NCBI RefSeq assembly: GCF_000143415.4 | Contig: NW_003314293.1 | Span: 1,022,062-1,086,061, forward strand | Origin: Selaginella moellendorffii | Taxonomy: Eukaryota; Plantae; Lycopodiophyta | DNA: 64,000 nucleotides | Reading direction: 5' to 3' | Part shown: piece by piece, positions 3,065 through 54,392 of the stretch | Layout: each line of letters starts with the position of its first letter | How positions within the stretch are numbered: the first letter of the stretch is position 1 | Notes under the pieces: model-generated | Told to the model about the DNA's origin: nothing | Database searches by the model: none | The model's input: only the letters and a program-made list of their open reading frames with translations | Translations under genes and position numbers: made by a program

Positions 3065-5477
3065 ATGTGTTGGGTGATGATATATCCACTAAGGAGTCCA
3101 AGGCTAGAGTGAATACGGATTGACAAGCAGGGTAGCTTGGTGAAGTGTTCAAGAGCCAGCCCTAATTCCTCTGAGAGATCAAACAATCGATACTCTAAGT
3201 CCAAGCGTGGGTGGCACTATCTACTTGGATACTTGGCGTGGCTTAACAAAACCTTGCTCTAGCCCCATAGCTAGAGCACCCAAAGGCAGAAGGTGGGGAG
3301 AGTACCCATGAGACTCATATAGAACCATGGTGCTTCGAAATGTTATCCCAAAGTCCTAGACTATGGAAAAGAAGAGGGGCAGTCCTCTGGTGTAGTGACC
3401 AAGGATATAGTCACATGGTGAAGAAGTCCCAAAGGATAGTGGGACTTAGTGGTCGAGCCAGTGGGTCTTGACCCAATAGCAATGTTGGTAAACATAGTCA
3501 TGGACCGAGAGGTATTTGGTGGGGACTGAAAAAAGGATATTTGGGAAGGCTATTCCCCATATCTGCAAGCATCCTAAGGATGCTAATGAGTGAATTTGAG
3601 ATGACCACTCATGGATGGATGACCTAGTCTTTGAGATACAAGATTGTGATGCAAGTGGTGTTGGACAACTAATGTGGCAAAAGTGAATGGGCATGGCCTT
3701 AGCGTAATGGGCTGATATGTTAGTGGTCCCTTTGGGTATCGGTTATGGGATCAGACACATGGAGCACTTGGACCAAGTGTAAAAGTTGAGTGGTAAAGAT
3801 GCCATTCTTGGGGCTAGCAAGCCCCAAGTCCAGAATAAAACTTATAATGCTCTATTTCATTAAAGTGGGATTTATTCAGTAAAATGGGACTAGGTACAAA
3901 TTTTCAAGTATTTGAAAATGACGTGAGATTATATGTTTTTTGTCCAGGGGCTAGACATATCTGGGGCATGGTGACTAGCTCGGTGACTTTGTGTCCAGAC
4001 TGAGTCCATCTGGTTGTATAATAAATCTCATTGTCAAGGTGAACAAGCCGAATCTGAAGCTAAAGAAGAGCGATGGCATGCGCGCACACATTATTTGTTT
4101 GTTCATTGAGCGTGTGGTGAGCTTTCCAAGATGAACGTCATTCCTATTAGCTAGACATATAACTTAATGGTGAGAACATTTAGATATTATTCAATGTTAT
4201 CTTTTTCTAACGAATCTAATTGTGAAGGTGTAGCAAGAGGCATTGCTAGTCTGGAGAAGTCATTTAACTCATTTGACCCTTAGTGTATTTTCATGAAACT
4301 AAATAACATTCATATTATTAAGGAATTTCTCTAGTACCTTTTTTTTACGACATAGAGGCTTGCATTTCTTTCAAAGGTGATTTAGTAAAAGGCCTGAGGG
4401 CACATGCCATTCTATTTCTCAGACCGGTATTAAGATATACTAGTGCAAAGGGAAAAAGGTATTTGGTGATCAAGTAAATGGCATGAGGGCACACGCCATT
4501 ATAAGCCTAAGCGCTAGTGGACACCTCCTTTTTGGTACTCTCAGCGGTACTATCATCCTTCTCCGGGTCAGTTGTTTTGCTTTGGATTGTTGTCTCTGAC
4601 ATTACTGGGGCGTTCTCGATAGTTGTTAATGTTGCCGTTTGTTCAGAAAAATGATCACCTGGAGTATAGTACGGGGAGTTTGGAAGACTTATATATTCTA
4701 CATCTTCACCTATCTCCTTCTCCGTCTCCTTTTCTGCCTCACTTACAGATTTTGTGCTTGCCATGAGAACGCTCTTCACCCTAAAATATGGAGTTCGTTG
4801 TGTTATAAAAGGAAATCAACACACACGCTGCAAGGGAATGATGGTACATAAAGCACGTAAGCCCACAATATGGGTTTATATGCCATTAATATAGGCCACA
4901 CGCCATATTATTAGATTTATGCACGTGTGATTGGTAAATGCATATGTCACATCATCTTTGTTTTACCTCACACACTATATCAGGCCTAATGAACCATATC
5001 ACATGTGCGCACATGCTATATATATGGAGAAGTATTATGCAAGGATAGAAAAATTCAATGCATGATTGTGGAGAGCAATGGCATGAAGCCACATGCTAAA
5101 TAACATTTTAGAGAAAGAATTAAAATAAAAACATGCAAACAGTACTGAGTGGACCAAGACTTAGAAGTGCACAATTGAATGAGGTATTTCTAATAAATAT
5201 TTCACTCACCTCATATAGGAATGGCTAACACTCTCAAATGGCGTATCGCCTCATTCCATCACCTCGCAATTTGTTATAACAATCCGATGAATTCATATTC
5301 GGCTTGTTCACCTTGAACTTTAAGTAAGATTTGCTAGAACAACTAAGAATTTATACTTGTTATTTGTATCATCTCACCTAGGAATGGCGTAAGGCCACAT
5401 GCCATCACGCCTCCTCTGATTCAGATTCGGATTGTTCACCTTGAAATAAAATACATTAGAAACTTAGTAAAGGAATA

Positions 5478-8471
5478 TTAATGAATCTCACCTTGAACCT
5501 GGGTTATGAATGCTCTTGCTGCATCTCTTGCATGGTCTGGCAAGGTGATGGTGGCACTCTGCTTCCGCATCCAACCATGCACAACATTATCCACCGATAT
5601 GCTCATGCTGGGATCCCTTGGATTCAGCACCCATCTCTTTTCTAGGCAATCCTTCGTATATCCGGAACTTGGCTTGAACCACTCCACAGTTACATTGAAG
5701 GAGTTAGTTTCCGCGTCCTCCTCTGCATCAGTGATGCAGCGCCCCACCCATATCATTTGTTTTTTATTACTGGGTCTGACAAGCACGACCATTCCTTTGC
5801 AGACCTGTACTGGATTGAATGCTGAATCCGGCTTCTTGTTCCTTGGCCCACAATAGTGATCATCAACATCGTTATCTGTCACTACATTTCCAGAGGACAT
5901 TGTTCCGCTACTATCTGGTGCTCTGGGTTCTGGCCAAAAGGACTCTTCCAATTCTTCATATACAACCGGCCCATTTTGGATAGCAGATATAATCTTCTCC
6001 CAGTATTCGATCAAAGGCTTGCACCTCTGAAAATAGGATTCTCCACCAAACACCAACCCCCTCTTCCAGAAGGCAATATGCTGTCTAATCCCGGCCACTA
6101 TACTTTCCTGGTCTTTGAGTCCATCTGGGTGCATCGGCCGTGGGGAACCCTGAGGAATCATAGGTTCCCCAGTTATGGGATCTCTCTTGAAGAGTTCAAT
6201 GCTGTCCACTGGCAGCCACACTGTGTCCCATTCTCTCATCTTGTATCCGTCCCTGATGTAGCCTCTTACAAACCCCTTAAAGTCTGGAACCTCTGTCACA
6301 AGTGCAGCTTCAACAGTGCCTTTGATGCAATTTTGGAATTCATCGTAGAGTTGTGAGAGGGTGAGGACATTGGATTGCCGGAGGGACTCTGCCAGGTGAC
6401 TGAACATGGCATCGACGTCTTCATGAGTGTGCCCAACCATGAGAAAGCCAAGTGTAACTGTTTCAAATATGCCTTTGGCAACAAGCATCGCCAAGTACGC
6501 GAAGACGTACATGTTTTTGTTCTCACTGCCAGCATTGTCTGTTTGGAGTAGAAGATGGGGTGGAAGGCCACATCGGCCGCAAGAACTTCCTTGAGATTCT
6601 GCTTCGTTTGGATGAGGCTGTGCATTCACCGGGCGACTAGCCTCGTCGGAATGGCATGAGGCCTCATGTGATAACCCTACAATCTGATGGCCAACATATT
6701 CACTGGGATGGCATGGGGCCCCACGCGATACTGCAAGCCTTTGCTCCTCCTCCAGCTAAACCCTATATGGGGTTCGATCGACAAGGGCCTTATGCAAGGG
6801 TTGGCTGTTCAGCTCAGTCTGAGCACTTTGCAGAGACCTTAAGTGTTTTGCTAGGGACGCAATCATCATGTTTGCACCCCCGCCACCCCATAGAGGTACA
6901 AAGAAGTTCCCATAGTTCTGGGCACCATGCCCATGAGCGATTATGCTAAACATAGACACAGGCAGCTGCATGGATGAAGAGATTGCCTTGGGGGCAGGAT
7001 TGAGTTGAGGTAAGCATGTCTTTTTTTGGTCCATTTTGTCGTGGATGATGCAGAGGTAAGAGTCAGGTCTCTCCATGGAGAGAATCCTGTTATGATAATA
7101 TGCAGTCCTGCAGCTTCTCTGCTCGATGTTGTGGTCGAGCCGCCTTCTAACCAACGTCTCTCGCTCTTGAGCGATGCAAGAATTCTTCGACAAAGCCATT
7201 TTGATAGCAGTGCACTCGTCACACTTTGAAAAGCTGGAGTACTTTCCTATACTCACATCCCTGAACCTATTGCTCCACAATCTACTAAATCTAGATTGGC
7301 TCAGCTTCCTGTAGCCATTACTCTGGAGTTCCCGATTCACATCTTCCAATATGGCCCCCTTGGTATACATGGAAGGGAGAACTCGTTGGGTGTCTCGAGT
7401 TCCATCTTCCAAGAGGCGGGTTTTATGTGGTTGCTGCTCGTTACATGTCTTGACAAACCTCTTGAAGATTGCCTCTCCATATACAACATGACCCCTGGTT
7501 TTGTGCGTACCGTCGTTCCCATGGACTGCCTGTTGAACCCTTTGTTCCTTGAACTCAGTTTTGATTCTGTAGAATGTGGTTCGAGGGACTCCATAAATGA
7601 TTCTCCATGCCTTCATGCAGACCAAACCCCTCTGGAAGACCATGCCCCCCACCTGATGTTCTGAAGCATCAACAGATGACCATAATGCCTCATACACAAA
7701 ATTGCGAGCTTCTTTCCAGGACAATGTCTTGTATCTTGCTCTCTCCTCTTCAATAGCATCCCAATCAGCATGTTGACAGCACCTCCTCTTGCAACAAGCA
7801 ACTGTCGAGACCATTCAAACCTCCATCGCCATTTTCTGCCTTTTCGGTTCATTGCTCAGATCCCTTTGGCTGCGCTTTAGGAAGGTGTACTTTCTTTTCC
7901 CATGAAGAGATGTTCTGTCATTAGTTGTAGTGGTGTTTGATTGTGAATCCTTCACATTCTCAAACACTAAGTGCCTCAATTTCCACCGCACAATGCTTCC
8001 AATAGTCAGACTGTTTTCTTCTGTGTCAACAACCTCTAAAATTGCAACTCCAATATCATCCGAGCCCAATTCTTGATTAGCAACCGCATCTCTTGGATCG
8101 ATGACTGTGGCTAAGCCCTCAGCTACCACCTCCCCCTCGGGGTTGTTTAGAAACACCTTTGCCTGAATCCATGTAGCACAGTTCTTAAGATCCACGGAGG
8201 GAACATGCGTTGCACTTGCGCTGTCCCCAACATCTGCTTTCTTCTGAAGATTTTTCAAGGCAACAACAACATTTACCCCGACGACCATCTCTCCTCGTTC
8301 AATAGCGACCACATTCCCATCGAAGACAGTCTCTACTGATACAGCAGCATTGCCTTCCCCAAGCCTTTGACAGTGTATAACAAAGTTCCGATCCATAGAC
8401 ACAAGGGTCGCTTTTGCAACTCTCTTCCCACCATTCAAAATGTAAACCTTTTCCCCAACCCTAAAGGCCAT
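5478..8471 (-). pseudogene. DDD transposase, Sola-like/DUF7869-type, ~997 codons with two in-frame stops
   Basis: ORFs 7815-8471, 6756-7814 and 5478-6629 are one frame broken by TGA (7815-7817) and TAG (6756-6758). Motifs: CCKRRCC, VCMKAWRIIYGV, FSKCDEC..H, IIHDKMDQKKTCLP, LLLQTDNAGSENKN, FLMVGHTHEDVDAMFS (D-D-D triad). A splice acceptor (TTCTGCACTTTCAG) lies one base before the ATG. Confidence 0.82.
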
Positions 8472-8817
8472 TCTGAAAGTGCAGAAAAGAAGTTAAGACC
8501 ATACAAAAAATGATTGGAGAATGGCCTAAATCATAACATACCAAAAAACCTCAATAGCATGAGGCCACATGCCATTATTCAAACATGCTATTGACACCCA
8601 CGTGAAATTTCGCATTCACAAAATTGGCATGAGGCCTCATGCCATCTTGATATACACACAGCTGCAGGCAAGTAAAAACATACATGACAATACGCTAGCC
8701 ATGAAATTGCAAGGGCCCAAGATGGCATGTGGCCTCATGCCATTTCTAAATGTGGTCCTAAGCCATTCCATGGTGAACATACCAGGAAGCACAAGTGCCG
8801 AATATCAAGAGGAAGCG

Positions 8818-8960
8818 GTAGCCACACCAAAGACAGTGCCGCTCGCAACACCGCAACTACTCGTAGCGCCGCTCGCAACACCGCAACTGCTCGTAGCGCC
8901 GCTCGCACAAACTGCCACTCGCATAAACTGCCGCTCGCAATGCCGCAACCGCTCGTAGAC
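8818..8960. repeat. CpG-rich ~30-bp tandem repeat upstream of the transposase
   Basis: GCCGCTCGCAACACCGCAACTRCTCGTAGC occurs twice, followed by degenerate units. Confidence 0.85.
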
Positions 8961-9079
8961 GCATAAACCACAACTCACAACGCCGCTTACACAAGCAGCG
9001 CTCACTGCGCTCAGCGGAACCAAGAACACGGCGCACAAAAATGATAGACCTAGGAATGAGTTCGAGAATTCAAAAATAA

Positions 9080-11006
9080 CACACGCTTGAACGTCACATC
9101 AAATCCTCTAACAAACCAGATCTTATGATTCCTCTGACAAATTTCAAACTGAGTAGCTTCTAGACTTTGCTGTCGGAGGTTGAACTTTGTCACATCATGT
9201 CCTTGCCTCGATCGAGTTGTGCCATATCAGTGATTCGAACTTTGCCATGCCATGTCAGCGATCCACGCCAAGATTATTCGCCGTGTAAAGGAATAATTAT
9301 GCTCTGTGTGTACGTCCATTTATGGCAATATAAGGCCACACACCATTCAAAGAATAATGCTAGTCGAGCATTTTTTGGTGCATTTTTGGGTTCAAAATTG
9401 CATGAGCCCACACGCTATAAAGTTTACCTGTACCAAAAATAGAAACAGCTTTATTTACTTGGGAATTTAAGTGGTTGAGGCATTTTTAAACTTACAAACA
9501 CATGCCCTACTTACATTCCTTTGGTTGCTTAAAATTCAAAAATATTATAAACCTTTCTTTTTGCATTTTCAATGTTTTCAATTATGGTTTTTGATTTTCG
9601 TAGGACCAGCCTAGTAATCTATTTGCATCCCGTCATGTTTATAGCTAGCTTTCGTTTGTCCCCTTCGCTAGCCTGAGATACATGTGCTCGGCATCTGCCT
9701 CTTACAGCATTTGCCCAGAAAGGGCATCTTTCTTCACGCAGCATTTGCCACATGTTTAGGGTTTAGGGTTTAGCAATTCAGTAGCTTGATAAACATGCAA
9801 ATACAGAACTTGATGCAAAATCTTTTGATATGTCACAATGCCCCTAGGACCATAAACACATTTCAATAGAGAGGGTCCTTTCATTTCATAACTCCTTACG
9901 TAGATCTTGGTGAAACCAGAGTTAGTGAAGTTGGTTTCTTGTGATCCCGCATCTGATTGTGATGTCCCTTTGCAGTGTCGATGGAAAGGTCAATGCACAC
10001 CAAACTGTAGAATCTTGGAGCAAAATAACGGTCGGATCTATGGCAAATGCCCCTGAAACATTGTAAGGCTCATGTGGTCTCATGTGGTGTCCGATCGAGA
10101 TGCTTCTTTCCAGGGTCATCAAGAAAGACATTGTATACCATTCTGTAAAATTTAGTTGCGATCTAACGGTTGGATCTCCAGAAAACTCAAAAAAATCAAC
10201 TGCGTGTCAGAATATTCTAGGAATATACTCCTATGTGCCCTTGAAAATGGCATGCGGCCCCACGCCATTCAAGAGATAACGCCAGATGACGCCGAGCATT
10301 TTTTGGTGTATTTTTTGGGATCAAAATTGCATGAGCCCACACGCTTGAATGTCACATCAAATCCTCTGACAAACCAGATCTTATAATTCCTCTGACAAAT
10401 TTCAAACTGAGTAGCTTCTAGACTTTGCTGTCGGACGTTGAACTTTGTCACATCATGTCCTTGCCTCGATCCAGCTGTGCCATGTCAGTGATTCGAACTT
10501 TGCCATGCTATGTCAGTGATCCGCGCCAAGATTATTTGCCGTGTAACTGCTCGGCATCTGCCTCTTACAGCATTTGCCCAGAAAGGGCATCTTTCTTCAC
10601 GCAGCATTTGCCACATGTTTAGGGTTTAGGGTTTAGCAATTCAGTAGCTTGATAAACATGCAAATACAGAACTTGATGCAAAATCCTTTGATATGTCACA
10701 ATGCCCCTAGGACCATAAACACATTTCAATAGAGAGGGTCCTTTCATTTCATAACTCCTTACGTAGATCTTGGTGAAACCAGAGTTAGTGAAGTTGGTTT
10801 CTTATGATCCCGCATCTGATTATGATGTCCCTTTGCAGTGTCGATGGAAAGGTCAATGCACACCAAACTGTAGAATCTTGGAGCAAAATAACGGTCGGAT
10901 CTATGGCAAATGCCCCTGAAATATTGTAAGGCTCGTGTGGTCTCATGTGGTGTCCGATCAAGATGCTTCTTTGCAGGGTCATCAAGAAGGACATTGTATA
11001 CCATTC
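9080..11006. repeat. Internal direct duplications in the intergenic spacer of the transposon
   Basis: About 9080-9290 matches about 10338-10547, and about 9686-10143 matches about 10548-11006. The second pair each carry TTTAGGGTTTAGGGTTTAG (9755-9773, 10618-10636). Confidence 0.85.
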
Positions 11007-11072
11007 TTTATTTAGTTGAACATCTGGCATTTTTGGAAATACAAGATGCTTTGGAATATCCAATCACCCATA

Positions 11073-14000
11073 AGTAACACCCGACATCGCAGACGTGATC
11101 CCCTACTACCGAACAATGAAGGGCGAGACGAGGTTTCCAGACTTGATCAATAAGAAGGTGTTGGACGATCAGAACATCCGGTTCTATGCCATCTCCGGGC
11201 AGCATTCTAGCTTGGCGATGCAAGAGATAGTTGTGGATATTATGGTGGGCGAGGAGGTGAAGAAAGTCTTCAAGACAAGAGTTGTCCGCCTGATAAAAGG
11301 CAACTCGCCCCTCCGATCTATCATATACATCTCCCACGCGCAGAATGTCAAGCAAGAAACGTGCTACAAATTGGGTCTGCACGAGACATTGGCACGAACA
11401 CGGAAGCTCTGGGTTCAACTGAAGAAGCCACAAAAACCAGGACAAGGACGTGCACTAGCAACTAGCGCCTGGCAGGTAAGCCTCGTTGCATGTGGCATAG
11501 CATGTGGCCTCATGCCATTTCCATTGCAGGAATTCTCGAGTCTTCTCTCGAAAACACTGGGGGTCAATGACACACTCAGCATCCATAACATTCTACTCAC
11601 AACAAAAGTTGTTTTTGACAAATGGGTAGATGTGCTGAGGAGGTACCATGACGGGGAGTTGCTAAACTCAATGGGTGTGGAGGACGGCCGAAAGCCCAAT
11701 GATTTGAAGCTCAACGCCTTGCGTTTCTCGCGGTCTCTAGACAATGACAACCTTCTGACAGTGGCTAATGCTCTTCTACGTGGTGAGGTAGTCTTCAACA
11801 AGACCAAAATGACTCTCGGCCATATTGTGACATACGAGGACTTGTGCACGACTCTGAGAGCTCGTGCGCTATTGAAGGATTGGATCTTCGAGCAAGTGGC
11901 CGTGGAGAGGGTGAGCATCGACACCACGCAAGAGATGATGGAAGAGCTGGAGTTGTCAAATGAAGACATCGACGAGTACGTGAAGGGGGCCCCCAAGTTC
12001 ATCGATCTGCTGCGGGATGCCACAAAAAGTAAAGTTGAGAAGTTGGATCAGTATCCAAATTTCATTAAGAGGGATGTCGACCGCCGGCTTCAGAAACAGC
12101 TCGACCCCGCAGCAGAGGCCTATCAAGAACCTTACCGGGTATACGTGAATTCGGATGAGGATCAAAGGTGGAGGAGCATCGTTTCCCGCGGAGATGAGCA
12201 GATCAAGAACATCTTTTGTGTGATGGACTTCACAAACGAGGAGATCACTCATGTAGACGAAGTCAGCTCCATCATTAACTTAATGGTGGGACTTGCGGAG
12301 GTGGAATCTTCAGTCCACTATATGATCTACGACTCCGAATCCTATCTCAAGTTCTGGAAGGCCTTGAACGAGGTGAAGGCTCGGTTGAAAGGCAAGGAGA
12401 TGTAGGAGATCCATGGGATAATGGCTAAGAAGAAGATACCGACGAATGTCCGCATCTTCACACTCGCCCTTGTTATTGGTCCTGCAGCAGAGTGGGACTG
12501 GAGTGACTTCCCAGCTTCGCTTGACAAGGCCGATCGAATTGACCTGAGGGAGGTCAATTTACCCGTGCCTGAGGAACTGAAGACGGCTATGGAGCTTTCA
12601 AATCCAGAGAAAGCTCCAGGTGCAGCATGGGAAATGCTTAGTTGGGTCTTCAACGCAATAGCGGGTGGGTCACCTGCTTCCGACTCTAAGGGCAAATGCG
12701 TTGTCGAGTACAATTGCGGCGGACTATTCTTTCGAGCCGCACTACTCAAGGGTGTCCCGTGTGTTGCGGTGACAAACTCCATTGAAGAGGTGACTTCAAT
12801 GGAGCATATAATTACAATTGCCAAAGAAAAACAGTATCTTCTCTGCGAACCTAGTGAGTACGCACTTTAAGTTTAAATGTTATCTCACAAGCTCTGTATG
12901 CAGGAGCGTGGCCACCCCCAGATGCTGAAACAGCGTTAACAGCTACTGTTGAAGATACCCATGTTGGGCCGAGCTCACAACCTGCACAAGGTAAGGTCAC
13001 GTGAGGCCTCACGCCATTTTGATTATAGATCGTTGTGAATATTCAGACACGAGGACTGAAAAGCGCACTGATGGCGCGTCGAAGAAGGACAAACAGACAA
13101 GCAATAGGAAAAAAGGAGGTACAAATTATATTTGCAATGGCGTGTGGTCTCATGCCATTCTTTGCAGGAGACACTTCTTCAAAGGCAAAACAGGCAAGCA
13201 CCAGCCAAGCTCAAACTGACAGTGGTCATAAAAAGCGAAAGCACGTTGGATAGTCGTCGGGATCAGAGGCGTTTGATTCGAAAAGGAAGAAGGGCAACGA
13301 AAAGATGATAGGTAATGCCTCGCGATTATGGCGTGTGTGCTCATGCCATTCATTGCAGATCAAGGGCTGAGTGAAAGCAGCCAGTCACCACCTCCTAACT
13401 CAGATTCCTATAGCAGACTCCCCTTCCCCAATCTCAATGGAGAGGTACAATGGATGAGGGATGCTTTTCAAGTCAGGGCCACGTTTTTCTCATCTCGTCG
13501 TCTTCGAAGGGTGCAAGAATGTGCAGAAACCATGTTAAGACAGTCGGGTGAGGATACGGTCCTAGGTCATGCACTAAAACAGGCTATGGATGTCTTGTAT
13601 TTTGAGATGGAGACTCGGCCAGATGATTTTCCCAAGATGGTCCTGGAAGAACAAGCCATCCAGCCTGAGCAGCCTATGGAAGAAATGAAGGAGGGGGATG
13701 AGGAGCCAGAGAAAGATAATGAGCAGGAAGAGCAGAAGGACGAAGAGGAGGACAAAGAAGAGGAGGACGAAGAAGAGGAGGACGAAGAGGACTTGGATGG
13801 TCCTCACAATGGTGACGATCACAATAACGACGACGACGATGATGACGACGATGGCCAGCCTGAGGTGGCCAAAGAGCAGCAGAGGAAGGTCATACAAGAC
13901 AAACCATCAGGTAAATAATAGTACATCCATTCCTAACCTTTTACCATTTCTAACATTGTCCATGTAGGTCGCAGAGCAAATGGTAAGTAGAGATTATTCA

Positions 14001-14474
14001 GTTGAATTAAGATACAAACTCTAGCCTTTAGTGTCGAGGAAGGATAGTGCCAAGCAAGGGTCGAAACGTATGTCCAATCCTTCAGAATCAGTAGTGTGCC
14101 CAAGTGATATTGGTCCTAGTTCCTCAATAGCAGTTGATGGTAAATACAGTATAGTCGATTCAATGTGCTAATGAGTTTGTTTTTAGTAGCACGGGAGGAT
14201 ACCATCTCAATCGAAGGGAGATATTTGGACATGCATATGGATCCGCCAGTGGACTCTACTTGCCTGCAAGAGTCATCAGAGCTGGTGGAGGCTACTATCC
14301 ATATCAACGCCAAACAAGCTGACCACGCTCCACTTGATGCTGCCCATACCACTGAGTCAATCTTGTCCACGTATCCAACTGACGGTGACCAGGCGCCATT
14401 GGACCCGCATGAGGCCACCCCAGCCGCCAAGCCGGTCGTATCCTCATTTCCAACGGATTCAACGTGTGCCCAAT
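11073..14474 (+). pseudogene. Cargo gene copy 1 (5'- and 3'-deleted): partial ParB-like, MTase-like and acidic regions
   Basis: Colinear with 49342-52743 at constant offset 38269, with the same short introns. It lacks the equivalents of ~47712-49341 and 52744-54166. Confidence 0.85.
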
Positions 14475-15669
14475 ATTAAAAGGATGGAAAGAAATTGGAC
14501 GACGATGACAAAGAGAAGAAAGAGGTGAAGCAGTGGCAGGGGGAGGAGAAGTGATTGAGTAGACATTTCCTTGTTTAAAATAAAATGGCATGTGCCTCAA
14601 TGCAGTTGAATTTTGTTATATTTATATACTATATAAAGGTTTGGAAACCTTATTTTACAAGTGGGATAATGATAATTCCCACTTTAACGAAATAGAGCTT
14701 TATGGAGGTTTTGAGTGAGACTCCTCCAAATAGTCGGAAGTGTGTTGAAGTGGCTAAAGTAGAATTGGAAAATTAAGTTGCTTACAAGCTAAATGTTTCA
14801 TTTGAACTTGTTATGGTTATCCTCACTCCACAATCCATGTCATTCATCTTCGCTCCACTTTCATATTCATTTGTCCTCACTCCATAGTTGGGGCCAAACT
14901 CTTGTCTATCTCCTCTACCCCCTCCTCTAAAGAAAACAATGTTTGAAGTGTGGAAGTAGAAAAGAGAAAATGAAAAAAATTGAGGAAAAACAATTGTGAA
15001 AGATATAAAAGTGGATAAAGAAGTATCAGAAGAGGAATTTGCAGTAGTTGGTAATGTAAAAATGGGGAAATCAAAAGGACATATGCTCAAAGCTTGGAAA
15101 ATAAGGGACTTTTTATTATAAAATACTTGTCACCACAATATAAACAAAAGATTCACACTACTCAACCTCCTCAACACATAATTCAACACTTGAGATAGAA
15201 AAATTAATAACAACATCCACATTCTCAAGGGAATATATAAACTCTTCAGTAACAATAAAAAAGCAAAGGCTCTTAACGGCACTCACAAGTGGGGATATAC
15301 ATTTAACTTGAAACTCCAGCCAAAGTGATTCAACCTTTGGAACAGGGGAATACTTAACACCGGAACTGATCAAAAACTCTATTAATGAGATACAAGCAAG
15401 ATTCTCAACTTCATGCATACACTTAATGTCCAGATTAGTAGGAGGAGGATAGAAAGCACTCAACTCAACACTAGATTAAGAATGAGAATTATCAAAGTTA
15501 TAAATGATTGATGTGCTAGGAGAAGAAAACACTACAGATGAAGACAAAATACTAGGAGAAATAAGAAAAGATTGGGAAAAAGTAAAAGGTAAAGAGAAAG
15601 GATTAAATGGTAGATTGAAAGATTGACATTTATTTTGTGAAATCTCCACTTCATTTCTAAAGCTATCTC

Positions 15670-21550: not shown

Positions 21551-22991
21551 AGGACCCGAGATGGAGTCCGAGATGGACCCGAGATGAAGATGGACCAGAG
21601 ATGGAGTTCGAGATGGAGTCTGAGATGGAGTCTGAGATGGAATTGGAGATGGAGTCCGAGATGGACCCAAGATGGAGTCCGAGATGAATCCGAGATGGAG
21701 TTCGAGATGGAGCCCGAGATGGACCCAAGATGGAGTCTGAGATGGAGTTTGAGATGGACCCGAGATAGAGTCCGAGATGGACCCGAGATGGAGTCCGAGA
21801 TGAACTCGAGATGGAGTCCGAGATGGAGTCCGAGATGGAGTCCAAGATGGAACCCGAGATGGAGTCCGAGATGGAACCGAGACCGAGACCGAGACCAAGT
21901 CTGAGTCCGAAATTGGGACCGAGACTGAGTCCGAGTTTGAGTTCGAGTCCGAGTCCGAATACTAATACAGGCAGTTGGGTGAAAGCCCAAAGCGATTGTC
22001 CCCCAGGAGGGGGGGGGGGGGGGGGGCTACGGGTGGTTCCAAAAGTATAGTAGGGAGAGTGTGGGGGTTGGAGCCCAGTGGAGCCAGTTTGGCCAGGAAA
22101 GGCTAGTTTGGCCCAGGAAAGCCATACCCAGCTATCGGGTGATGGGATGACCACTGGGAAGTCTAAGACTAAAGTGAATACGGACCGATAAGCGGGGTAG
22201 CTTGGTGAAGTGTTCAAGAGTCGGCTCTAGTTCCCTCGGGAGATTGACTAGCCGATGTTCCCAGTCCAAGTGTGGGTGGCACTACCTACTTGGATACCAG
22301 GCGTGGCTCAATGGAACCTCGCTCTAAGCCCATGGCTAGAGCACCCAAGGGCAGAAGGCAGGGAAAGTACCCAGGTGGCTCGCGTAAGGCCACGGTGTTC
22401 TGAAATGTTGCCCCAAAGTCCCAGACTGTGGGAAGGAAGAGGAGCAGACCTCTGGCATAGTGAGTAAGGACATAGTCACATGGTGAGGAAGTCCCAGAGG
22501 ACCGTGGGACTTAGTGGTCATGCTTGTGGGCCTTGATCTTGTGGCAGTGTTGGCAAACACAGCCATGGACAGAAAGGGACTTGGTGAGGACCGGAAAAAG
22601 GATATTGGGGAAGGCTATTCCCCATGTCTGTGGGCATCCTAAGGATGCTAAGGAGTGGATCTGAAATGATCACTCATGGACGGATGGCCCAGTCCTTGAG
22701 AGACGGGACTATGATGCAAGTGGTGTTAGACCACCGATGTGACCAAGGTAAAGGGGCATGTCCTTAGTGTAACAGGCTGATATGTCAATGGTACCTTGGG
22801 GTGTCGGTCATGGGATCGGACATGTGGAGCATTTGGATCAAGTGCAAAGGTTGAGTGGCGGGGATGCCATTCTTGGGGCTAGCAAGCCCAAGTCTGAAAT
22901 AGGACTTATGGAGGTTGTGAGTGAGACTTCTCTAAGTGGTTGGACGTCTGGGTAAGTGACTAAAGTAGAAAGGAAAATTTAATCGCTTACA
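21551..22991. repeat. Second copy of the LTR-like repeat, with GAGATGGAGTCC satellite (21553-21960); contains the empty site for the Sola-like insertion
   Basis: Homologous to 2790-3846 + 14701-14786; ends in AATCGCTTACA. Confidence 0.75.
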
Positions 22992-23085
22992 ATGTTAAAT
23001 AACCATCCCAATCCGAATGCTAAAAGTTCACATACTTCGCGATCATCCCTTTGAACGTCCGAACGAGCCATTCCACCAAACCATC

Positions 23086-30900: not shown

Positions 30901-31279
30901 GGCTTCGCACGAAGCAAAAGACTTCGGAAATGAATGCCAAATTGCATCACCGACTTAAATGGCCCTTGGCGAAGATGATGCAATTGTTTTAAGGCATTAT
31001 CACAGTCGTTGGCATGTTCAAAGGCGTGTTTGAAGATGTCTAGGAGAACACTCCAATCCCCACGAGTGGCTGCGCTCAAATCATTGTAGCACTACAATGC
31101 TGTCCCTTGGAGACACGTGGGAAACTCACGCAAACGTTGAGCATCATCCCAAGAATGATATGTGGCAATCACCGTGAAGTGATCGAACTAATGGTACTCA
31201 TCATCTCCGGGATTCCTGCAAAAGAACTCTGGCCGAACGCGAGGATTGGCACGAAGAGCAGGAGGAGTTGTACCACGTG

Positions 31280-35404: not shown

Positions 35405-35929
35405 ATGTGCTGTGAATGCCACCATCAATTGAGTTTGGTTGTTCAATTGCAAGCGTATAGCATCAAGCAATTGGACCAACTATTCTGCAGAGTCAAAGGA
35501 GGAGATTGCTGATCTGCCATGAAGATGAACGAAAAAGAAAGAGCAAAAGAAGAGAATTGACAAAAAGCTAAAAGGAAATGGTAGATTTAGACAATACGAA
35601 AAACTAGATCTAAACCAAAATCCTGAAAGGGAAGAACAAAAGAAAGGAAATAGAAAAAACTAGATCTAGATGATGCAAAAGCTAGATCTAAACCAAAATC
35701 CCAAATTCAAGCACTCCTCTAGGACAATCAAAGGTGCCCCTCATCTCCACCAATGTGAATGCTTGGAATATGGAAAGGGAATATAAAAAATGTGCATATC
35801 CATTAGCCCAGAAAACCCTAACTTATATACAGGAGCAAGTAGTCCGGATTTAAATCAATCTGACAGCTACTAAAATCCTAATACGCTAATATTAGTATAC
35901 GGCATCGTAGCTATACACTTGGCCCTCAC

Positions 35930-37700: not shown

Positions 37701-37987
37701 ATGCTTTATTTCGTTAAAGTGGAACTTTTCATTATCCCACTTATGGTGTGTGGCCACATGCCATTTTTATAACAACAATAAAAAATTGAAGTTTTAGCTT
37801 TATAATTTATAAATTAAAAACTTTTCATATGATTTTGTGTTATAATATTGTGAAATATAAAAAATAAATTAAAAAACTGATAGAAATATTAATAAATATT
37901 AATTAAGTACTAGGAAATGGCATGTGGACACATGCTAATTAATGTCCCACTTTACTGAGTAAGTTCCACTTTAACGAAATAAAGCAT
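37701..37987. mobile_element. MITE of the Sola-like family
   Basis: Perfect 27-bp TIRs ATGCTTTATTTCGTTAAAGTGGAACTT, near-identical to the large element's TIRs. Inserted in a poly-C run of the LTR and absent from the sister LTR (~56073). Carries two family palindromes (37743, 37917). Confidence 0.92.
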
Positions 37988-46148: not shown

Positions 46149-46666
46149 CTCAGACACACATTAAGCATCTCCACCAGGAGCTCTTTGATGTGCTTCGGGG
46201 ATGCACACTAGCAGAGATATGGAAGGCTCGCTGCACTAGGCTATTTGATGACACGGACCCCTCGGCTCAAGCAACTATCTCAAAGGTTTGGTCCAGATTG
46301 ATCGTCTCACTTGCGGCCCGCCTGGACACGCTGATCAAACGAGGCGAGGAAGGGAAGATAGTGAAGGAGAAGAAGCTATGGCCGTTTTTTAGAGGAAGAA
46401 GCGAGGCTGGAGAAGAAGAATGGACGTGGAAACCACCAATATGGATTTGGCAGCACATGTTCAAGAATGACGGTACGTGTACCTCTCCGAGTCAACAGAG
46501 TTCAACACCAGGAACTTCAGAAGCTTTGAGATCGGATGTCACGGACCCAAGTACCAGTTCTACTTTGTCCCCCTCGTCCCACCCCCCCTAAAAATCTTGA
46601 AGAGCTCTTTCCCGGTTTCGAGCAGGTCGAAATCAGTTTATAGAGGATAAATTAAAACCCCATTGA
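46149..46666 (+). mobile_element. Second, diverged 3' fragment of the same LINE family in tandem
   Basis: Repeats ~45603-46130 with many substitutions. Followed by CAAAGGGTAAAT (46667-46678), which duplicates 41875-41886 (TSD). Confidence 0.88.
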
Positions 46667-47406
46667 CAAAGGGTAAATAAAGCCGGCTACCAGAAGTCGC
46701 TTGATCTCCAACTTCATCTCTGAGTGAGCTACAAGGCTGAAACGTTGCATCTTTTGACAGACTGGTTTGGCTGACTCTGAAAGCACAATACTGTGCATGA
46801 TTGTGTCCATGGGAACTCCTAGAAGCTGGCTGTAGTCCCAAGCAAACATGTCCTTGAAACAGTGGAGGCAATCTAAGAGCTTTGCTGCGTTTGTTGAAGT
46901 AAATGATGTGGCAATAAAGACCAAGTCTTTATCATCACCTAGGAAAACAGCATGAACCTTGGAGTCTAGAAAAACCTTGGGCTTAGAGGGCTCATCTATC
47001 TTAGATTCCTCCTTGGCCTTGGAAACCAAAGAGTAGGGAGTGCCTTTTGCCTCTTGCATCATGGTGATTGCTTGCTGTGATAACCTGTCTACCCAAAAGT
47101 TTTCTTCAGGAGGGACACTTTGAAAATTCACCTGAGAGAACTCATCCTTCAGGTTGATCGCTTGCTGCCATAGCTCTTTTAGGTTCTCTTTGCGGACTTG
47201 GTATTCTCCAGTAAGTTGGCGTATGATGAGTTGCGCATCTCCAATGAAAGTGACTCATCTAAACTTGAGATCTGTGGCCAACTTCATGGCACTGATAGCT
47301 GCCAAGTACTCTGCTTCATTAGCTGATGTTGCTGGCAAAGTGATAGAGAGGTTGGCTACTTTGTTCTCCGCAGAATCAATCATCCAAACTCCAATGCCGG
47401 CACTCT

Positions 47407-50400
47407 GATCAAGATGCTTCTTTGCAGGGTCATCAAGAAAGACATTGTATACTATTCTGTAAAATCTAGTTGCGATCTAACGGTTGGATCTCCAGAAAAC
47501 TCAAAAAAATCTCGCGCATATCAGAATATTCTAGGAATATACTCCTATGTGCCCCTTAAAATAGCATGCGGCCCCACGCCATTCAAGAGATAACGCCAGA
47601 TGACGCCGAGCATTTTTTGGTGCATTTTTTGGGATTTTTTGTATACCATTCTTTATTTAGTTGAACATCTGGCATTTTTGGAAATACAAGATGCTTTGGA
47701 ATATCCAATCATGCATGGTGTAAATATAGCGAGGGTATTAAATGATATCCCAATCATGATCTTTTTTTTGGATTTCGCGTGCATGCAGTCCGAGGAATGA
47801 TGACGTTGCGGATTTCTTTTGGATTTCACGTGCATGCATGCGCGCGGCGATCCAGAAATTAATGGTGGCGCCCAAGTCCGAGGAATGATGACATGGCGGG
47901 ATTACCAACCGTCGTGACATTTCGCGCGTGTGAGGTTAGGTTTTGCATTTTGCTTCGTACTCGCGCTCGCATCGCACTCCCACTCGCGATCACGCTCACA
48001 TTCGCGCTCATCTACCTTCTGTACAGGTTTCTCGTGTGCATCGGCGTCCACTCGCGCTTGCATCACACTCGTGCTCGCATCGCGCTCGCATCGAGCTCGT
48101 GTGCATCGGCATCCACTTCAAGACACACCCAGTTTGTAACTTCGCCGCCAACTCCGCCGCCCACTCCGCCACCCACACGCAGCCCACTTGGCGTCCCGGG
48201 AGATTTCAGCACCACTCTCCAACTGTAAGTGGCAGAGTAGCTTTGCTGCTACGATCCGCTGCACACACAGTGCACATTTGCCAGCGAGTCCGGCTTCGAT
48301 TGTCACGCCTCCATTCGGCTTTAAATGGTAAGTCTTTTAGGCCAAGTAGAAAATGGCATGAGGCCACATGCCATTCAGTAGCAACATTGGCATGCACCGA
48401 TTGGGCTCTCAAGTGCAATCCGGTTACAGATGGCGTGTAGCCTCATGCCATCTTAGGATGCAGCCTCAAGACATCTGATGCAGTGGTGAATGGCGTGTGG
48501 CCTCACGTTATTTCCAGCTGCTAGCTTTTCATCTGTCAGCTCTAATTGTTGTGCATTTCTGAACAGGCGAGGAATTGCGTTCTTCTTCCAGCCACTGTCA
48601 ATGTGGATGCAGAGAAGGGGGAGGAGCTCACCAGTTGGACTTTTGGGATGGAAGGCGAGGATCTGAGGCTGTACAACACAGATGGTGGGAGAAAAGAATG
48701 CATGGGGATCCTCATCCAAGTGATAGACACTCCATGCAGTTCCATGCAAGAATATGGACTGGCACTTGTGGTAGAGACAGCGTTCGCCTTCAAGATCCAC
48801 CTTGCACATCCTAGCGGCTTCCCGGAGGGGGGCAGCAGCTATGAGGAATTCCTAGAGGGAGCTAGGGAGAGGTTGTCCAGGAGGCCCACAATTTCAAAGA
48901 CGCTGCGGGTCTATGAAGATCACATGGAATCCACGGACCTCACCTACGGCGATGTTCAAAAACTATATTCCAACATTGAGCTGTTGAGAGTGCCTCCAGT
49001 TCGCGAAGCGAAGGGGAAGGGGGTCGATCTGGAAACTACCCCGAAGCAGAAAGGGTGGTCAAGCTCAAGCCGACGTCCGACTCTTTTGCTGCAAAAAAGA
49101 AGCTACTCGGTGATGCCATTGCCTCGGGTTCGAACACTACACCCACCAAAAGGAAGAGCCGCAAAAAGCAGAAAGAGCAAGAAAAGGCAGCAAAAATCGT
49201 CGCAGATAATAGTACTTGTTACTATTCTAACAAAGTATATACAATCGACGTGAGCCGTATCGACATCCAAAGCAAATACAACCACAGGCTAGTATTTGAT
49301 GAGTGGGTGGAGAAACTGAAGCAGAAGATGCTAGCAAGTCCAGTAACACCCGACATCGCAGACGTGATCCCCTACTACCGAACAATAAAGGGCGAGACGA
49401 GGTTTCCAGACTTGATCAATAGGAAGGTGTTGGACGATCAGAACATCCGGTTCTATGCCGTCTCCGGGCAGCATTCTAGCTTGGTGATGCAAGAGATAGT
49501 TGTGGATATTATGGTGGGCGAGGAGGTGAAGAAAGTCTTCAAGACAAGAGTTGTCCGCCTGATAAAAGGCAACTCGCCCCTCCGATCTATCATATACATC
49601 TCCCACGCGCAGAATGTCAAGCAAGAAACGTGCTACAAATCGGGTCTGCACGAGACATTGGCACGAACAAGGAAGCTCTGGGTTCAACTGAAGAAGCCAC
49701 AAAAACCAGGAAAAGGACGTGCACTAGCAACTAGCGCCTGGCAGGTAAGCCTCGTTGCATGTGGCATAGCATATGGCCTCACGCCATTTCCATTGCAGGA
49801 ATTCTTGAATCTTCTCTCGAAAACACTGGGGGTCAATGACACACTCAGCATCCATAACATTCTACTCGCGACAAAAGTTGTTTTTGACAAATGGGTAGAT
49901 GTGCTGAGGAGGTACCATGACGGGGAGTTGCTAAACTCAATGGGTGTGGAGGACGGCCGGAAGCCCAATGATTTGAAGCTCAACGCCTTGCGTTTCTCGC
50001 GGTCTCTAGACGACGACGACCTTCTGACAGTGGCTAATGCTCTTCTACGTGGTGAGGTAGTCTTCAACAAGACCAAAATGACTCCCGGCCATATTATGAC
50101 ATACGAGGACTTGTGCACGACTCTGAGAGCTCGTGCGCTATTGAAGGATTGGATCTTCGAGCAAGTGGCCGTGGAGAGGGTGAGCATCGACACCACGCAA
50201 GAGATGATGGAAGAGCTAGAGTTGTCAAATGAAGACATCGACGAGTACGTGAAGGGGGCCCCCAAGTTCATCGATCTGCTGCGGGATGCCACGAAAAGTA
50301 AAGCTGAGAAGTTGGATCAGTATCCAAATTTCATTAAGAGGGATGTCGACCGCCGGCTTCAGAAACAGCTCAACCCCGCAGCAGAGGCCTATCGAGAACC

Positions 50401-53400
50401 TTACCGGGTATACGTGAATTCAGATGAGGATCAAAGGTGGAGGAGCATCGTTTCCTGCGGAGATGAGCAGGTCAAGAACATCTTTTGTGTGATGGACTTC
50501 ACAAACGAGGAGATCACTCATGCAGATGAAGTCAGCTCCATCATTAACTTAATGGTGGGACTTGCGGAGGTGGAATCTTCAGTCCACTATATGATCTATG
50601 ACTCCGAATCCTATCTCAAGTTCTAGAAGGCCTTGAACGAGGTGAAGGCTCGGTTGAAAGGCAAGGAGATGTAGGAGATCCATGGGATAATGGCTAAGAA
50701 GAAGATACCGACGAATGTCCGCATCTTCACACTCGCCCTTGTTATTGGTCCTGCAGCAGAGTGGGACTGGAGTGACTTCCCAGCTTCGTTCAACAAGGCC
50801 TATCGAATTGATCTGAGGGAGGTCAATTTACCCATGCCTGAGGAACTGAAGACGGCTATGGAGCTTTTGAATCCAAAGAAAGCTCCAGGTGCAGCATGGG
50901 AAATGCTCAACTGGGTCTTCAACGCAATAGCCGGTGGGTCACCTGCTTCCGACTCCAAGGGCAAATGCGTTATCGAGTACAATTGCGGCGGACTATTCTT
51001 TCGAGCCGCACTACTCAAGGGTGTCCCGTGTGTTGCGGTGACAAACTCCATTGAAGAGGTGACTTCGAAGGAGCATATAATTACAGTTGCCAAAGAAAAA
51101 CAGTATCTTCTCTGCGAACTTGGTGAGTACGCACTTTAAGTTTAAATGTTATCTCACAAGCTCTATATGCAGGAGCGTGGCCAGCCCCAGATGCTGAAAC
51201 GGCGTTAACAGCTACTGTTGAAGATACCCATGTTGGGCCGAGCTCACAACCTGCACAAGGTAAGGTCACGTGAGGCCTCACGCCATTTTGATTATAGATC
51301 GTTGTGAATATTCAGACACGAGGACTGAAAAGCGCACTGGTAGCGCGTCGAAGAAGGACAAACAGACAAGCAATAGGAAAAAAGGAGGTACAAATTATAT
51401 TTGCAATGGCGTGTGGTCTCATGCCATTCCTTGCAGGAGACACTTCTTCAAAGGCAAAACAGGCAAGCACCAACCAAGCTCAAACTGACAGTGGTCATAA
51501 AAAGCGAAAGCACGTTGGACAGTCGTCGGGATCAGAGGCGTTTGATTCGAAAAGGAAGAAGGGCAACGAAAAGATGATAGGTAATGCCTCGCGGTTATGG
51601 CGTGTGTGCTCATGCCATTCATTGCAGATCAAGGGCTGAGTGAAAGCAGCCAGTCACCACCTCCTGACTCAGATTCCTATGGCGGACTCCCCTTCCCCAA
51701 TCTCAATGGAGAGGTACAATGGATGAGGGATGCTTTTCAAGTTAGGGCCACGTTTTTCTCATCTCGTCGTCTTCGAAGGGTGCAAGAACGTGCAGAAACC
51801 ATGTTAAGACAGTCGGGTGAGGATACGGTCCTAGGTCATGCACTAAAACAGGCTATGGATGTCTTGTATTTTGAGATGGAGACTCGGCCAGATGATTTTC
51901 CCAAGATGGTCCTGGAAGAACAAGCCATCCAGCCTGAGCAGCCTATGGAAGAAATGCAGGAGGGGGATGAGGAGCTAGAGAAAGATAATGAGCAGGAAGA
52001 GCAGAAGGACGAAGAGGAGGAGAAAGAAGAGGAGGACGAAGAAGAGGAGGACGAAGAGGACTTGGATGGTCCTCACAATGGTGACGATCACAATAACGAC
52101 GACGACGATGATGACGACGATGGCCAGCCTAAGGTGGCCAAAGAGTAGCGGAGGAAGGTCATACAAGACAAACCATCAGGTAAATAATAGTACATCCATT
52201 CCTAACCTTTTACCATTTCTAACATTGTCCATGTAGGTCGCAGAGCAAATGGTAAGTAGAGATTATTCAGTTGAATTAAGATACAAACTCTAGCCTTTAG
52301 TGTCGAGGAAGGATAGTGCCAAGCAAGGGTCGAAACGTATGTCCAATCCTTCAGAATCAGCAGTGCGCCCAAGTGATATCGGTCCTAGTTCCTCAATAGC
52401 AGTTGATGGTAAATACAGTATAGTCGATTCAATGTGCTAATGAGTTTGTTTTTAGTAGCACGGGAGGATACCATCTCAATCGAAGGGAGATATTTGGACA
52501 TGCATATGGATCCGCCAGTGGACTCTACTTGCCTGCAAGAGTTATCAGAGCTGGTGGAGGCTATTATCCATATCAACGCCAAACAAGCTGACCATGCTCC
52601 ACTTGATGCTACCCATACCACTGAGTCAATCTTGTCCACGTATCCAACTGACGGTGACCAGGCGCCATTGGACCCGCATGAGGCCGCCCCAGCCGCCGAG
52701 CCGGTCGTATCCTCATTTCCAACGAACTCAACGTGTGCCCAATCGTCTGACTACGTGCCGTTGGAACCTCCCTACACCGCCCCTACTGCCTGTTCGGTCA
52801 TGTCCACTTTGCTAACGGAGGCACCAGCTGAAATGGCGTGTGATCACACGCCATCGGAACCACCCCATGCCACTGTTGAGCCAATTGTACCAGAGTCTAC
52901 AGCTGAAATGGCATGTGCCCACACGCCATCGGATGCGATTGACCCCACATTGCAGAGGAGAGTATTTCCGCCCTTCACGTTTCCTCGACCAAAACCCTCT
53001 CAACGACCATCGGGAGCACCATTCCCTAATATTGTAGATGGTAAAATTGACTTGTACCATTTTTTATGCTGACGCATTTCATTTCAGAGTTACGGCGAAG
53101 GTACTGTATCGTTTTTGATCTGAACGGTGTCCTTTTCTCCCATGAGCGTGGTTCGTCCTCGAATGTCACTGCACCCTCCAAATCCTGCGGTCGCAAGTTG
53201 GTCAAAAGAGACAGATTCACATTAATCACACGGGAGAAACTGCGGGATCTAATATTGACCATGCGACACTTAAAACAGAGGGCCGGGTTCAATTTGCAAT
53301 TGGGAGTTTGGACATCCATGATGCGCCACAATGCATTAACGTTGCTACAGATGATGCACGATCAGACGCGAATAATATTACCATTTGACTTTCTCCTAAT

Positions 53401-54392
53401 GCAGGAGGATTGCTTGACTATGGTCCATGTGAGGGGTAGCAAGCCCATCTTCGTCAAGCCAGAGGCTGTAGTGATGAACCGGACTGCTAGGTCAAATGAA
53501 ATCCTCATCATCGATGACTCGCCGATTAAAACTGCAGCGAACACGCACACATATGCAGTGCACCCCATCTCTTGCAGTATGGAAACTAGGGAGAAGAAAC
53601 CATATGTTCTGGGGGACCTTGCAAAACGGCTTGGAGCGATGGTGATAGAGAACCGGCCAGTCTAGGAGGTGGCTGCAGAAATCAACCAAATGGCAGATGG
53701 AACGGTATATCAGAAGCCATTTGATCGGACAGACACCAGTCATCATTTATGGCATGTATATTGTCTAGCCAAGCACTATCCGCATCTCCATAATCTGCTC
53801 AACCAGATGGGTTCTTCGACCACTGAACATGAGCGTGGACGTATTAGAGAAGAGATGGCATTACTATTGGGTTTAAATCCTGATAGTGTGGAGAGTGATG
53901 AAATTCCAAGATTATTGTATAGGCATTGGAGGCAAAAAATAACAGTCTGAGATGGCATGTATTTATTTAAAAATGTAACTTATTATGGCATGGGGTTCCA
54001 TGCCATTGTATTAATATTAAAAGACAATTCTTTGAGAGGATTTGCATTATACTAGAAGTGTTACAGCATGTTATTGGAAGTCTACGAAGTTGTTTTATTA
54101 ATAAGGGGAAAGTAAAGATTGAATGGGGACTTGGGCTCCACCTAGACTCGGAGCAACTGAGCCAATATTAAAAGGATGGAAAGAAATTGGACGACGATGA
54201 CAAGGAGAAGAGAGAGGTGAAGCAGTGGCAGGAGGAGGAGAAGTGATTGAGTAGACATTTCCTTGTTTAAAATAAAATGGCATGTGCCTCAATGCAGTTG
54301 AATTTTGTTATATTTATATACTATATAAAGGTTTGGAAACCTTATTTTACAAGTGGGATAATGACAATTCCCACTTTAACGAAATAGAGCTT
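47407..54392. mobile_element. Sola-like transposon copy 2: left half missing, full cargo gene and right TIR retained
   Basis: Starts abruptly in spacer sequence (GATCAAGATGCTTC, compare ~10956). Ends TCCCACTTTAACGAAATAGAGCTT, identical to copy 1's right TIR. Confidence 0.88.
48325..53950 (+). pseudogene. 11-exon cargo gene (~1640 codons): ParB/Srx-like domain, degenerate N6/N4-MTase-like fold, acidic tract, FCP1/NIF-type HAD phosphatase
   Basis: Exons 48325-48327, 48567-49744, 49799-51122, 51173-51259, 51316-51387, 51437-51580, 51628-52179, 52237-52251, 52301-52408, 52456-53040, 53088-53950. All 10 GT-AG introns keep frame. One frameshift near 49050 and TAG stops at 50624, 50672, 52146 and 53663. 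Motifs: FYAVSGQHS; PKKAPGAAWEML..CVIEYNCGG..AALLKGVPCVAV; IVFDLNGVL, VWTS, LIIDDSPIK. Confidence 0.8.

Follow-up and report, generated by a model that had tools for sequence, protein, structure and literature searches.

A 64,000-nucleotide stretch of the genome of the lycophyte Selaginella moellendorffii (contig NW_003314293.1, positions 1,022,062 to 1,086,061 of the forward strand, hereafter the window) contains two damaged copies of a large DNA transposon. The evidence points, with a probability of about 0.82, to a land-plant family of cut-and-paste elements of the Sola1 superfamily, approximately 13 kb in length, in which two genes lie head to head and the second is an old accessory gene. 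The first gene encodes a DDD transposase. The second, referred to here as the cargo gene, encodes a protein in which a predicted ParB/Srx fold is followed by a beta-class amino-methyltransferase fold, an acidic linker and an FCP1/NIF domain, and a 22-bp palindrome is repeated throughout both copies. A two-gene lineage with an accessory second protein had been proposed in an earlier note on the window and was supported by a homologous gene pair in the liverwort Riccia (locus L004) and by relatives of the cargo protein in Riccia (P0102) and the fern Adiantum (P0058).

Structure and decay of the two copies

Copy 1 was bounded by terminal inverted repeats (TIRs) of ~25 nt with 3 mismatches, the left repeat reading (A)ATGCTCTATTTCATTAAAGTGGGA and the right, on the opposite strand, AAGCTCTATTTCGTTAAAGTGGGA. 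The insertion of this copy duplicated 4 bp of target, as the earlier note had thought probable; this was seen from a paralog within the window (22126-23000) that contains both flanks without the element. This paralog aligned with 3061-3845 at 80% identity over 785 bp and with 14689-14794 at 79% identity over 107 bp. The empty site at ~22896-22909 (insertion point ~22905) had the sequence ACTTATGGAGG, in which TTAT is present once. The exact ends of copy 1 are either 3847-14699, with TTAT as the duplication, or 3848-14700, with TATG; the latter follows if canonical ATGC...GCAT termini are used, and includes one later G>A change. The empty site is supplied by a segmental duplication of ~80% identity (2765-3845 and 21566-22909) that was already present when copy 1 inserted and contains tandem repeats of 12 nt (GAGATGGAGTCC-like).

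In copy 1 the two genes are arranged head to head, with the transposase encoded by the minus strand and the cargo protein by the plus strand. The defects of this copy are the stops in the transposase, two deletions in the cargo gene and one internal duplication. Copy 2 lacks the transposase and the left TIR, stopping abruptly at 47404 on its left edge. The two copies were 97.6% identical (82 differences) between 11073-14474 and 49342-52743 in a self-comparison, and 98% identical over the last 232 bp (14470-14701 and 54162-54393); short pieces of spacer were also common to both. Missing from copy 1 were 1630 bp (equivalent to 47712-49341), where the junction contains the filler CCCATA, and 1418 bp (equivalent to 52744-54161), with CCAAT microhomology on both sides. 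Both segments were lost from copy 1 and not gained by copy 2, in agreement with the deleted plus-strand gene recognized there by the earlier note. That note had also joined the two copies into an element of about 13.9 kb with head-to-head genes. The arrangement held, but since copy 1 carries an internal duplication of 672 bp, the ancestral length was nearer 13.2 kb.

Of the 82 differences that separate the copies, 74 were transitions. The family was highly repeated in a DNA run, and at variable positions the window copy had mostly A/T where the bulk of the genomic copies had G/C. Such a bias is expected of silenced repeats in which methylated cytosines are deaminated. Both copies in the window are dead relics in which C>T and G>A transitions have accumulated.

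The transposase gene

The transposase frame begins with an ATG at 8471 and ends with the stop codon at 5478-5480, and is interrupted in copy 1 by an in-frame TGA (7815-7817) and an in-frame TAG (6756-6758). P0059, a database protein of 764 residues from another copy of the family, was 96% identical to it, collinear and open across both positions, with Arg in place of the TGA and Gln in place of the TAG. The gene is therefore one long intronless open reading frame (ORF) with two nonsense mutations in copy 1, consistent with CGA>TGA and CAG>TAG changes of the C>T type. Placement of TAG 6756-6758 within an intron was rejected, as P0059 reads straight through this position.

The transposase core corresponded to Pfam DUF7869 (E=6e-36). 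The motifs IIHD, QTDNAGSENKN and MVGHTHEDVD matched the published transposase of Sola1-1_Ec32 from Ectocarpus, the sequence of which was taken from the supplement of PMC12477816; MVGHTHEDVDAMFS was among the conserved core motifs. The window sequence QTDNAGSENKNMY...TVTLGFLMVGHTHEDVDAMFS aligned with QVDNTVAENKNNY...TVTLCFMMVGHTHIQIDQIFS of Sola1-1_Ec32 without gaps and with the same spacing, 27 of 52 residues being identical as counted by eye. The two proteins also agreed in the CCx3C and CxxC motifs upstream and in the first Asp (MMD/IIHD), while the ENKN motif was absent from a Sola2 fragment in the same supplement. Sola1-1_Ec32 has a 4-bp target duplication, and its best match in Repbase is Sola1-1_PPa (PMC12477816). 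The window element has the DDD core, the 4-bp target duplication and the TIRs of a Sola1 element. The transposase, described in the earlier note as Sola-like, was filed as a putative member of Sola1 because of the match to the Sola1-1_Ec32 core, DUF7869 and the 4-bp target duplication. Proteins related to it at 23-41% identity were present in two liverworts, Riccia and Calypogeia, and in a sea anemone.

At 6590-6760, in the interval that separates the first two catalytic Asp residues, lie ~75 in-frame codons that contain two palindromes and have no counterpart in the Ectocarpus protein. At the equivalent place in Riccia, the protein alignment has a gap of 830 bp with four palindromes.

The cargo gene and its coding capacity

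The frame map of copy 2 gave plus-strand coding blocks at 48546-50623, 50675-51136, 51585-52145, 52413-53069, 53051-53662 and 53666-53947. The earlier note was right that this copy has no transposase and shares the right TIR of copy 1, but its cargo gene is not whole. A 1-bp deletion follows 49049; in the reads, other genomic copies have one extra A at this point, by which the frames of 48546 and 48980 become continuous. The main block is ended by a TAG at 50624-50626 that is TGG in copy 1. The gene of copy 2 is thus broken, and some of the introns in the 11-exon model of the earlier note may merely bridge the frameshift and the stop. A mini-intron of 33 or 55 nt at ~50620-50674, which would remove the shared TAG 50672-50674, was rejected as unsupported, since the longer form would disrupt the reading frame and the shorter one would be very small for a plant intron. 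No paralog of the cargo gene was found elsewhere in the 64-kb window by tblastn and HMM searches, which included 60554-64000.

Predicted domains of the cargo protein

The only domain found by Pfam in the cargo protein was NIF (E=8e-6; score 26.1 bits, cut-off 21.8). The main block had no match in Pfam or NCBIfam even at E up to 10, and no relevant match came from a profile search of PDB sequences. When 1.8 billion representative proteins were searched exhaustively, 15 weak matches were obtained at E<=0.001, the best at 3e-8, and those that were traced were land-plant proteins from Selaginella, Calypogeia, Adiantum and Riccia. P0102, a Riccia protein of 1064 residues, belongs to the same 90% cluster as one of these matches, P0043.

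The AlphaFold model of the main block contained a ParB/Srx fold at residues ~79-217. Structural comparison (VIA) matched this fold to PadC (Z 9.6), KorB (9.0), pNOB8 ParB (8.6) and sulfiredoxin (7.4), with Z values of 6.1-9.6 for the top 8 matches versus 4.7 or less for unrelated structures. ParB, Noc, KorB and sulfiredoxin likewise made up nearly all of the top 35 Foldseek matches. The motif ISGQHS was conserved in this domain across the family, one relative having VDGQHT, and occupied the place corresponding to the GERR box of CTP-binding chromosomal ParB, which was absent. We take these motifs to resemble those of the DGQHR/DndB-type branch.

In the ESM Atlas, the nearest family to the main block (48980-50623) was DUF3723, an accessory family of fungal Starship elements, with a score of 0.95; Pfam gave no confirmation. 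If true, this link would connect two transposon accessory families.

The methyltransferase region was modelled on the Selaginella homolog P0029, in the part that corresponds to the final portion of the main block together with the next block. The top 11 structural matches of the model were all beta-class N6A/N4C DNA methyltransferases (Z 8.8-11.3), at a pLDDT of 54-81 in the better parts of the domain and below 50 over residues 291-384. Riccia homologs had the motif HPASK...VLDFFSGG and matched Pfam N6_N4_Mtase at E=0.03 and, for P0102, 5.8e-4. The best of these scores, 20.3 bits for P0102, was below the gathering score of 26.7, and the pieces from the window had no match. The motif order was that of the beta class, IV before I, with D-x-x-x upstream of (V/I)(I/L)(D/E)x(N/F)xGG.

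The catalytic (D/S)PPY motif was replaced in every member examined, by DFTN in the window, DLTH in Riccia, DAAH in Adiantum, and DSAN and DLRR in others. Because this replacement extends throughout the family, the domain is probably inactive and would not methylate. An active N6A/N4C DNA methyltransferase that marks the element's own palindromes would agree with the beta-class fold of the homolog model and with the retained motif-I-like glycine loop and HPxxK-like motif, and methylation has been put forward for the algal proteins (PMC12477816). The loss of DPPY in all of the members examined and the failure of any member to reach the Pfam threshold make such an activity quite improbable.

The FCP1/NIF domain was more readily recognized in the Adiantum protein P0058, at 61.9 bits. 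The DxDx(T/V) motif was altered in both proteins, to DLNGVL in the window and DLNGLL in Adiantum, such that the second Asp was replaced by Asn.

Conservation of the gene pair in land plants

At the Riccia locus L004, a cargo gene on the minus strand (4391->1140) and a transposase gene on the plus strand (7787->11854) were arranged head to head as in the window, with 25-31% protein identity to the window pair. The order of domains was collinear in the window protein, Riccia P0102 and Adiantum P0058. These data support the assignment of the element to a two-gene lineage in which the second protein is a conserved accessory factor and not a captured host gene.

The earlier note had itself raised the possibility that the plus-strand gene is an ordinary host gene, acquired in a one-off, Pack-type capture and without a role in the element. 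Homologs of the cargo gene without a nearby transposase were indeed present at L001 in Selaginella, L002 in Calypogeia and L007 in Riccia. The first of these, P0029 (D8RBM5; L001 10001-11425, GL377575.1), the closest homolog in Selaginella, lies between ordinary ArfGap and VQ genes, on both haplotype scaffolds, with no transposase within 10 kb. D8RBM5 covers the helical and methyltransferase-like parts of the cargo protein without ParB, and its gene may be a domesticated or relic derivative of the transposon gene. A one-off capture is nevertheless highly improbable given the same head-to-head pair at 25-31% identity in Riccia, which has its own palindromes, the identical order of domains in liverwort, fern and window, and the comparable pair published for the Ectocarpus Sola1 element (PMC12477816). 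Furthermore, the cargo domains are of bacterial or phage type, unlike those of a normal plant gene.

Palindromes dispersed through the element

The palindrome of the window family is 22 bp long, with the consensus ATGGCRTG-N6-CAYGCCAT (ATGGCATG-N6-CATGCCAT). It was found 29 times in the window, versus 0.56 matches expected from shuffled sequence; 27 of these were in the two copies and 2 in a miniature non-autonomous derivative of the family (Table 1). The miniature element has perfect TIRs of 27 bp and one palindrome beside each end, at 37743 and 37917. It sits in a poly-C tract, which is uninformative on the length of the duplication, and its empty-site paralog is found 18 kb away at 56021-56172. 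The retention of palindromes by the miniature element suggests that they are cis-acting sites for mobility.

Riccia elements had palindromes of their own. L004 contained 30 copies of a different 22-bp palindrome, TCATNGNGAC-GCGTCNCNATGA, versus 0 expected, as arrays in the spacer and as single sites inside the genes. L005 76-9001 (Riccia sorocarpa CM100799.1) contained a Sola1-like transposase and 28 private palindromes, AGTAAGGAC...GTCCTTACT, in regular arrays. Six palindromes, GCTTCGGGACGCGTCCCGAAGC, with a spacing of 58-60 bp were present at L007 13855-14151 (Riccia sorocarpa CM100801.1), between blocks of the cargo gene for P0102 in an unaligned gap that is probably an intron. No transposase lay within 10 kb of this locus.

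The ParB-like accessory protein is slightly favored as the candidate binder of the palindromes. The transposase could also be the binder, as a possible but less probable candidate, because arrays occur at loci without a detected cargo gene. In its full form this alternative holds that the palindromes are docking sites for the transposase, through its N-terminal 225 residues or its Cys-rich domain, and that the ParB-like protein is unrelated to them. The 28 private palindromes of L005 would agree with this, since a cargo homolog was not detected within the 7 kb examined upstream and hhalign of the cargo profile against the upstream ORF was negative; the arrays of this locus, however, reach the end of the stretch examined, and a cargo gene may lie beyond. 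The position of the palindromes directly beside the TIRs of the miniature element is likewise as expected of cis-acting sites for transposition. Docking of the transposase is nonetheless doubtful, as the cargo-only locus L007 retains palindromes and the palindrome has no sequence relationship to the TIR, the site that the transposase has to bind. In addition, proteins of the ParB family classically bind palindromic sites as dimers.

Points weighed against the proposed two-gene Sola1 family

Several points count against the reading of the element as a two-gene Sola1 family. A cargo gene lay within 10 kb at only one of the four liverwort transposase loci examined; it was not found in the DNA stretches examined at L003, L005 and L006, all of which have palindrome arrays. 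The putative assignment to Sola1 is a comparison by eye with one published sequence, not a Repbase phylogeny. The model behind the predicted methyltransferase fold is that of the Selaginella homolog and not of the protein in the window, and confidence in the domain is moderate. Finally, no RNA support was found for either gene or for any splice junction, there being no spliced contig and no certain RNA run. The sole possible RNA run (X20) gave unspliced pieces with zero joints and showed neither expression nor introns.

Table 1. Coordinates of the element copies, genes, palindromes and insertion-site features in the window.
Feature	Position	Strand	Basis or remark
Copy 1, TIR-bounded element, defective	3847-14700		Self-BLAST, end sequences, alignment to empty-site paralog
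Target site duplication TTAT, left copy	3843-3846		Right copy at 14700-14703; TTAT once in paralog
Sola1-type DDD transposase gene (putative), ~998 codons	5478-8471	-	Frame map, Pfam DUF7869, P0059, Sola1-1_Ec32 motifs
Internal duplication specific to copy 1, 672 bp	10322-10993		Derived from 9080-9288 and 9685-10158; self-BLAST, junction sequences
Cargo gene remnant in copy 1	11073-14474	+	5' 1630 bp and NIF-bearing 1418 bp absent
Palindromes of copy 1 (17)	4389-14606		Starts 4389, 4478, 4998, 5078, 5238, 5384, 6651, 6708, 8554, 8624, 8722, 9397, 10247, 11497, 13137, 13328, 14585
Element-free paralog of copy 1 flanks (empty site)	22126-23000		Self-BLAST
Miniature non-autonomous derivative of the window Sola1 family, 287 bp	37701-37987	-	BLAST to both copy 1 ends, 86-90% identity
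Copy 2, 5'-truncated, without transposase and left TIR; cargo gene and right TIR kept	47404-54391		Self-BLAST, end sequences
Main cargo block: predicted ParB/Srx, helical region, N-terminal half of methyltransferase-like domain	48546-50623	+	Frame map, reads, copy comparison
C-terminal half of methyltransferase-like domain, motif-I-like VIEYNCGG	50675-51136	+	Family alignment, homolog model
Acidic Asp/Glu-rich linker block	51585-52145	+	Translation, repeat family D4
FCP1/NIF-type HAD phosphatase-like domain, first motif DLNGVL not DxDxT	53051-53947	+	Pfam NIF
Palindromes of copy 2 (10)	47561-54298		Starts 47561, 48353, 48430, 49766, 51406, 51597, 52833, 52908, 53985, 54277

Other features of the window

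Neither copy includes the assembly gap at 23333-23432, which belongs to an unrelated inverted duplication (23086-27962 and 31279-35407; arms of ~4.9 kb, 93-98% identity). The partner arm has 78 nt in place of the gap and the sides are collinear. As the gap is outside both copies, the findings on them are independent of it. An inverted repeat of 87-93% identity, 1572-2373 and 60591-61385, spans nearly the whole window, and a second assembly gap (60751-60850) lies inside its right arm.

Discussion

In the proposed mechanism, the DDD transposase of ~1000 residues would bind the TIRs, cut out the element and reinsert it, duplicating 4 bp of target. The second gene would be an accessory gene of long standing, derived from bacteria or phages and maintained by vertical inheritance. 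A dimeric protein encoded by the element would dock on the 22-bp palindromes (8-N6-8), which are private to each lineage. The accessory protein would then serve as a self-recognition factor, either aiding transposition or controlling the chromatin or transcription of the element, as does TnpA of En/Spm, and would act by binding or scaffolding and not as an enzyme. An extension of this mechanism, in which the accessory protein brings a CTD-phosphatase-type module to its own copies through the palindromes, thereby steering transcription or escaping silencing, with specificity and palindrome changing together by lineage across land plants, is unlikely; if true, it would provide a eukaryotic, transposon-borne counterpart of ParB/parS.

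To our knowledge, Sola elements have generally been described as carrying a transposase only. The layout is nonetheless a known one, and the claim of the earlier note that it was undescribed did not survive comparison with two published systems. The first is Sola1-1_Ec32, an Ectocarpus element of 21.5 kb with an opposite-strand gene for a protein of 1104 residues with ParB-like and DNA methyltransferase domains (PMC12477816, Genome Biol 2025). The window family resembles it in the catalytic motifs, the 4-bp target duplication, the large size and the opposite-strand ParB-methyltransferase gene. Indeed, the features of the algal class of accessory genes were present, with an opposite-strand gene in the same element (copy 1 and L004) and ParB followed by methyltransferase (from the predicted folds and from P0102). 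The two differ in host and dimensions: Sola1-1_Ec32 is from a brown alga and has TIRs of 282 bp, whereas the window family is ~13 kb with TIRs of ~25 bp. A phosphatase domain, loss of catalytic motifs and dispersed palindromes are unreported for Sola1-1_Ec32, and the likeness of the accessory proteins is one of domain description only. The refuting condition set by the earlier note, a family already catalogued with this second ORF, thus applies at the level of the superfamily, as distinct from the present plant family.

The second published system is the CACTA-related Plavaka family of the red alga Bostrychia, in which the accessory genes are PAG2 and PAG3 (Petroll et al. 2025, bioRxiv 10.1101/2025.02.11.637652). 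It likewise has an accessory protein with an N-terminal ParB domain, adjoining arrays of tandem inverted repeats and proposed binding to its own element (Petroll 2025). In contrast to the window family, Plavaka has a transposase of another superfamily, its ParB domain is fused to a 2OG oxygenase and its methyltransferase is found in a separate SET-domain protein. The repeats of Plavaka are tandem arrays beside the gene, whereas the palindromes of the window family are distributed across the element.

More distant comparisons can be made with other two-protein systems. The maize CACTA element En/Spm encodes TnpD and TnpA, of which TnpA binds many short internal sites and acts in both transposition and epigenetic control. 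The likeness lies in the combination of a transposase with a second element-encoded DNA-binding protein that recognizes repeated internal sites. The proteins, however, are unrelated, TnpA and TnpD are produced from one alternatively spliced transcript, and the TnpA sites are subterminal motifs of 12 bp. Fusions of ParB with N6_N4 methyltransferases were reportedly described from bacteria and phages by Iyer, Abhiman and Aravind in 2011. These have the same two domains in the same order, with motif IV before I, but keep DPPY, are thought to be active and lack the acidic linker and FCP1/NIF. PIF/Harbinger and KDZ are eukaryotic two-gene DNA transposons that have kept a second, non-transposase gene over the long term; they differ from the window family in their transposases and in their second proteins (Myb-like and TET/JBP, respectively).

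No description of ParB, a transposon and FCP1 in combination was found in the searchable literature. The layout is known, but no account seems to exist of this land-plant branch, in which the catalytic motifs are degenerate, an FCP1/NIF module has been added and palindromes occur across the whole element.

These findings extend transposons that have a ParB accessory gene and palindromes of their own from algae to land plants, with relatives traced to a liverwort, a fern and a lycophyte. The accessory protein has gained an FCP1/NIF module, and both of its enzyme-like domains seem to be inactivated, which points to binding or scaffolding and not to modification of DNA. Lineage-specific palindromes, miniature elements that keep them and a possibly domesticated single-copy descendant in Selaginella provide material in which this role can be tested.

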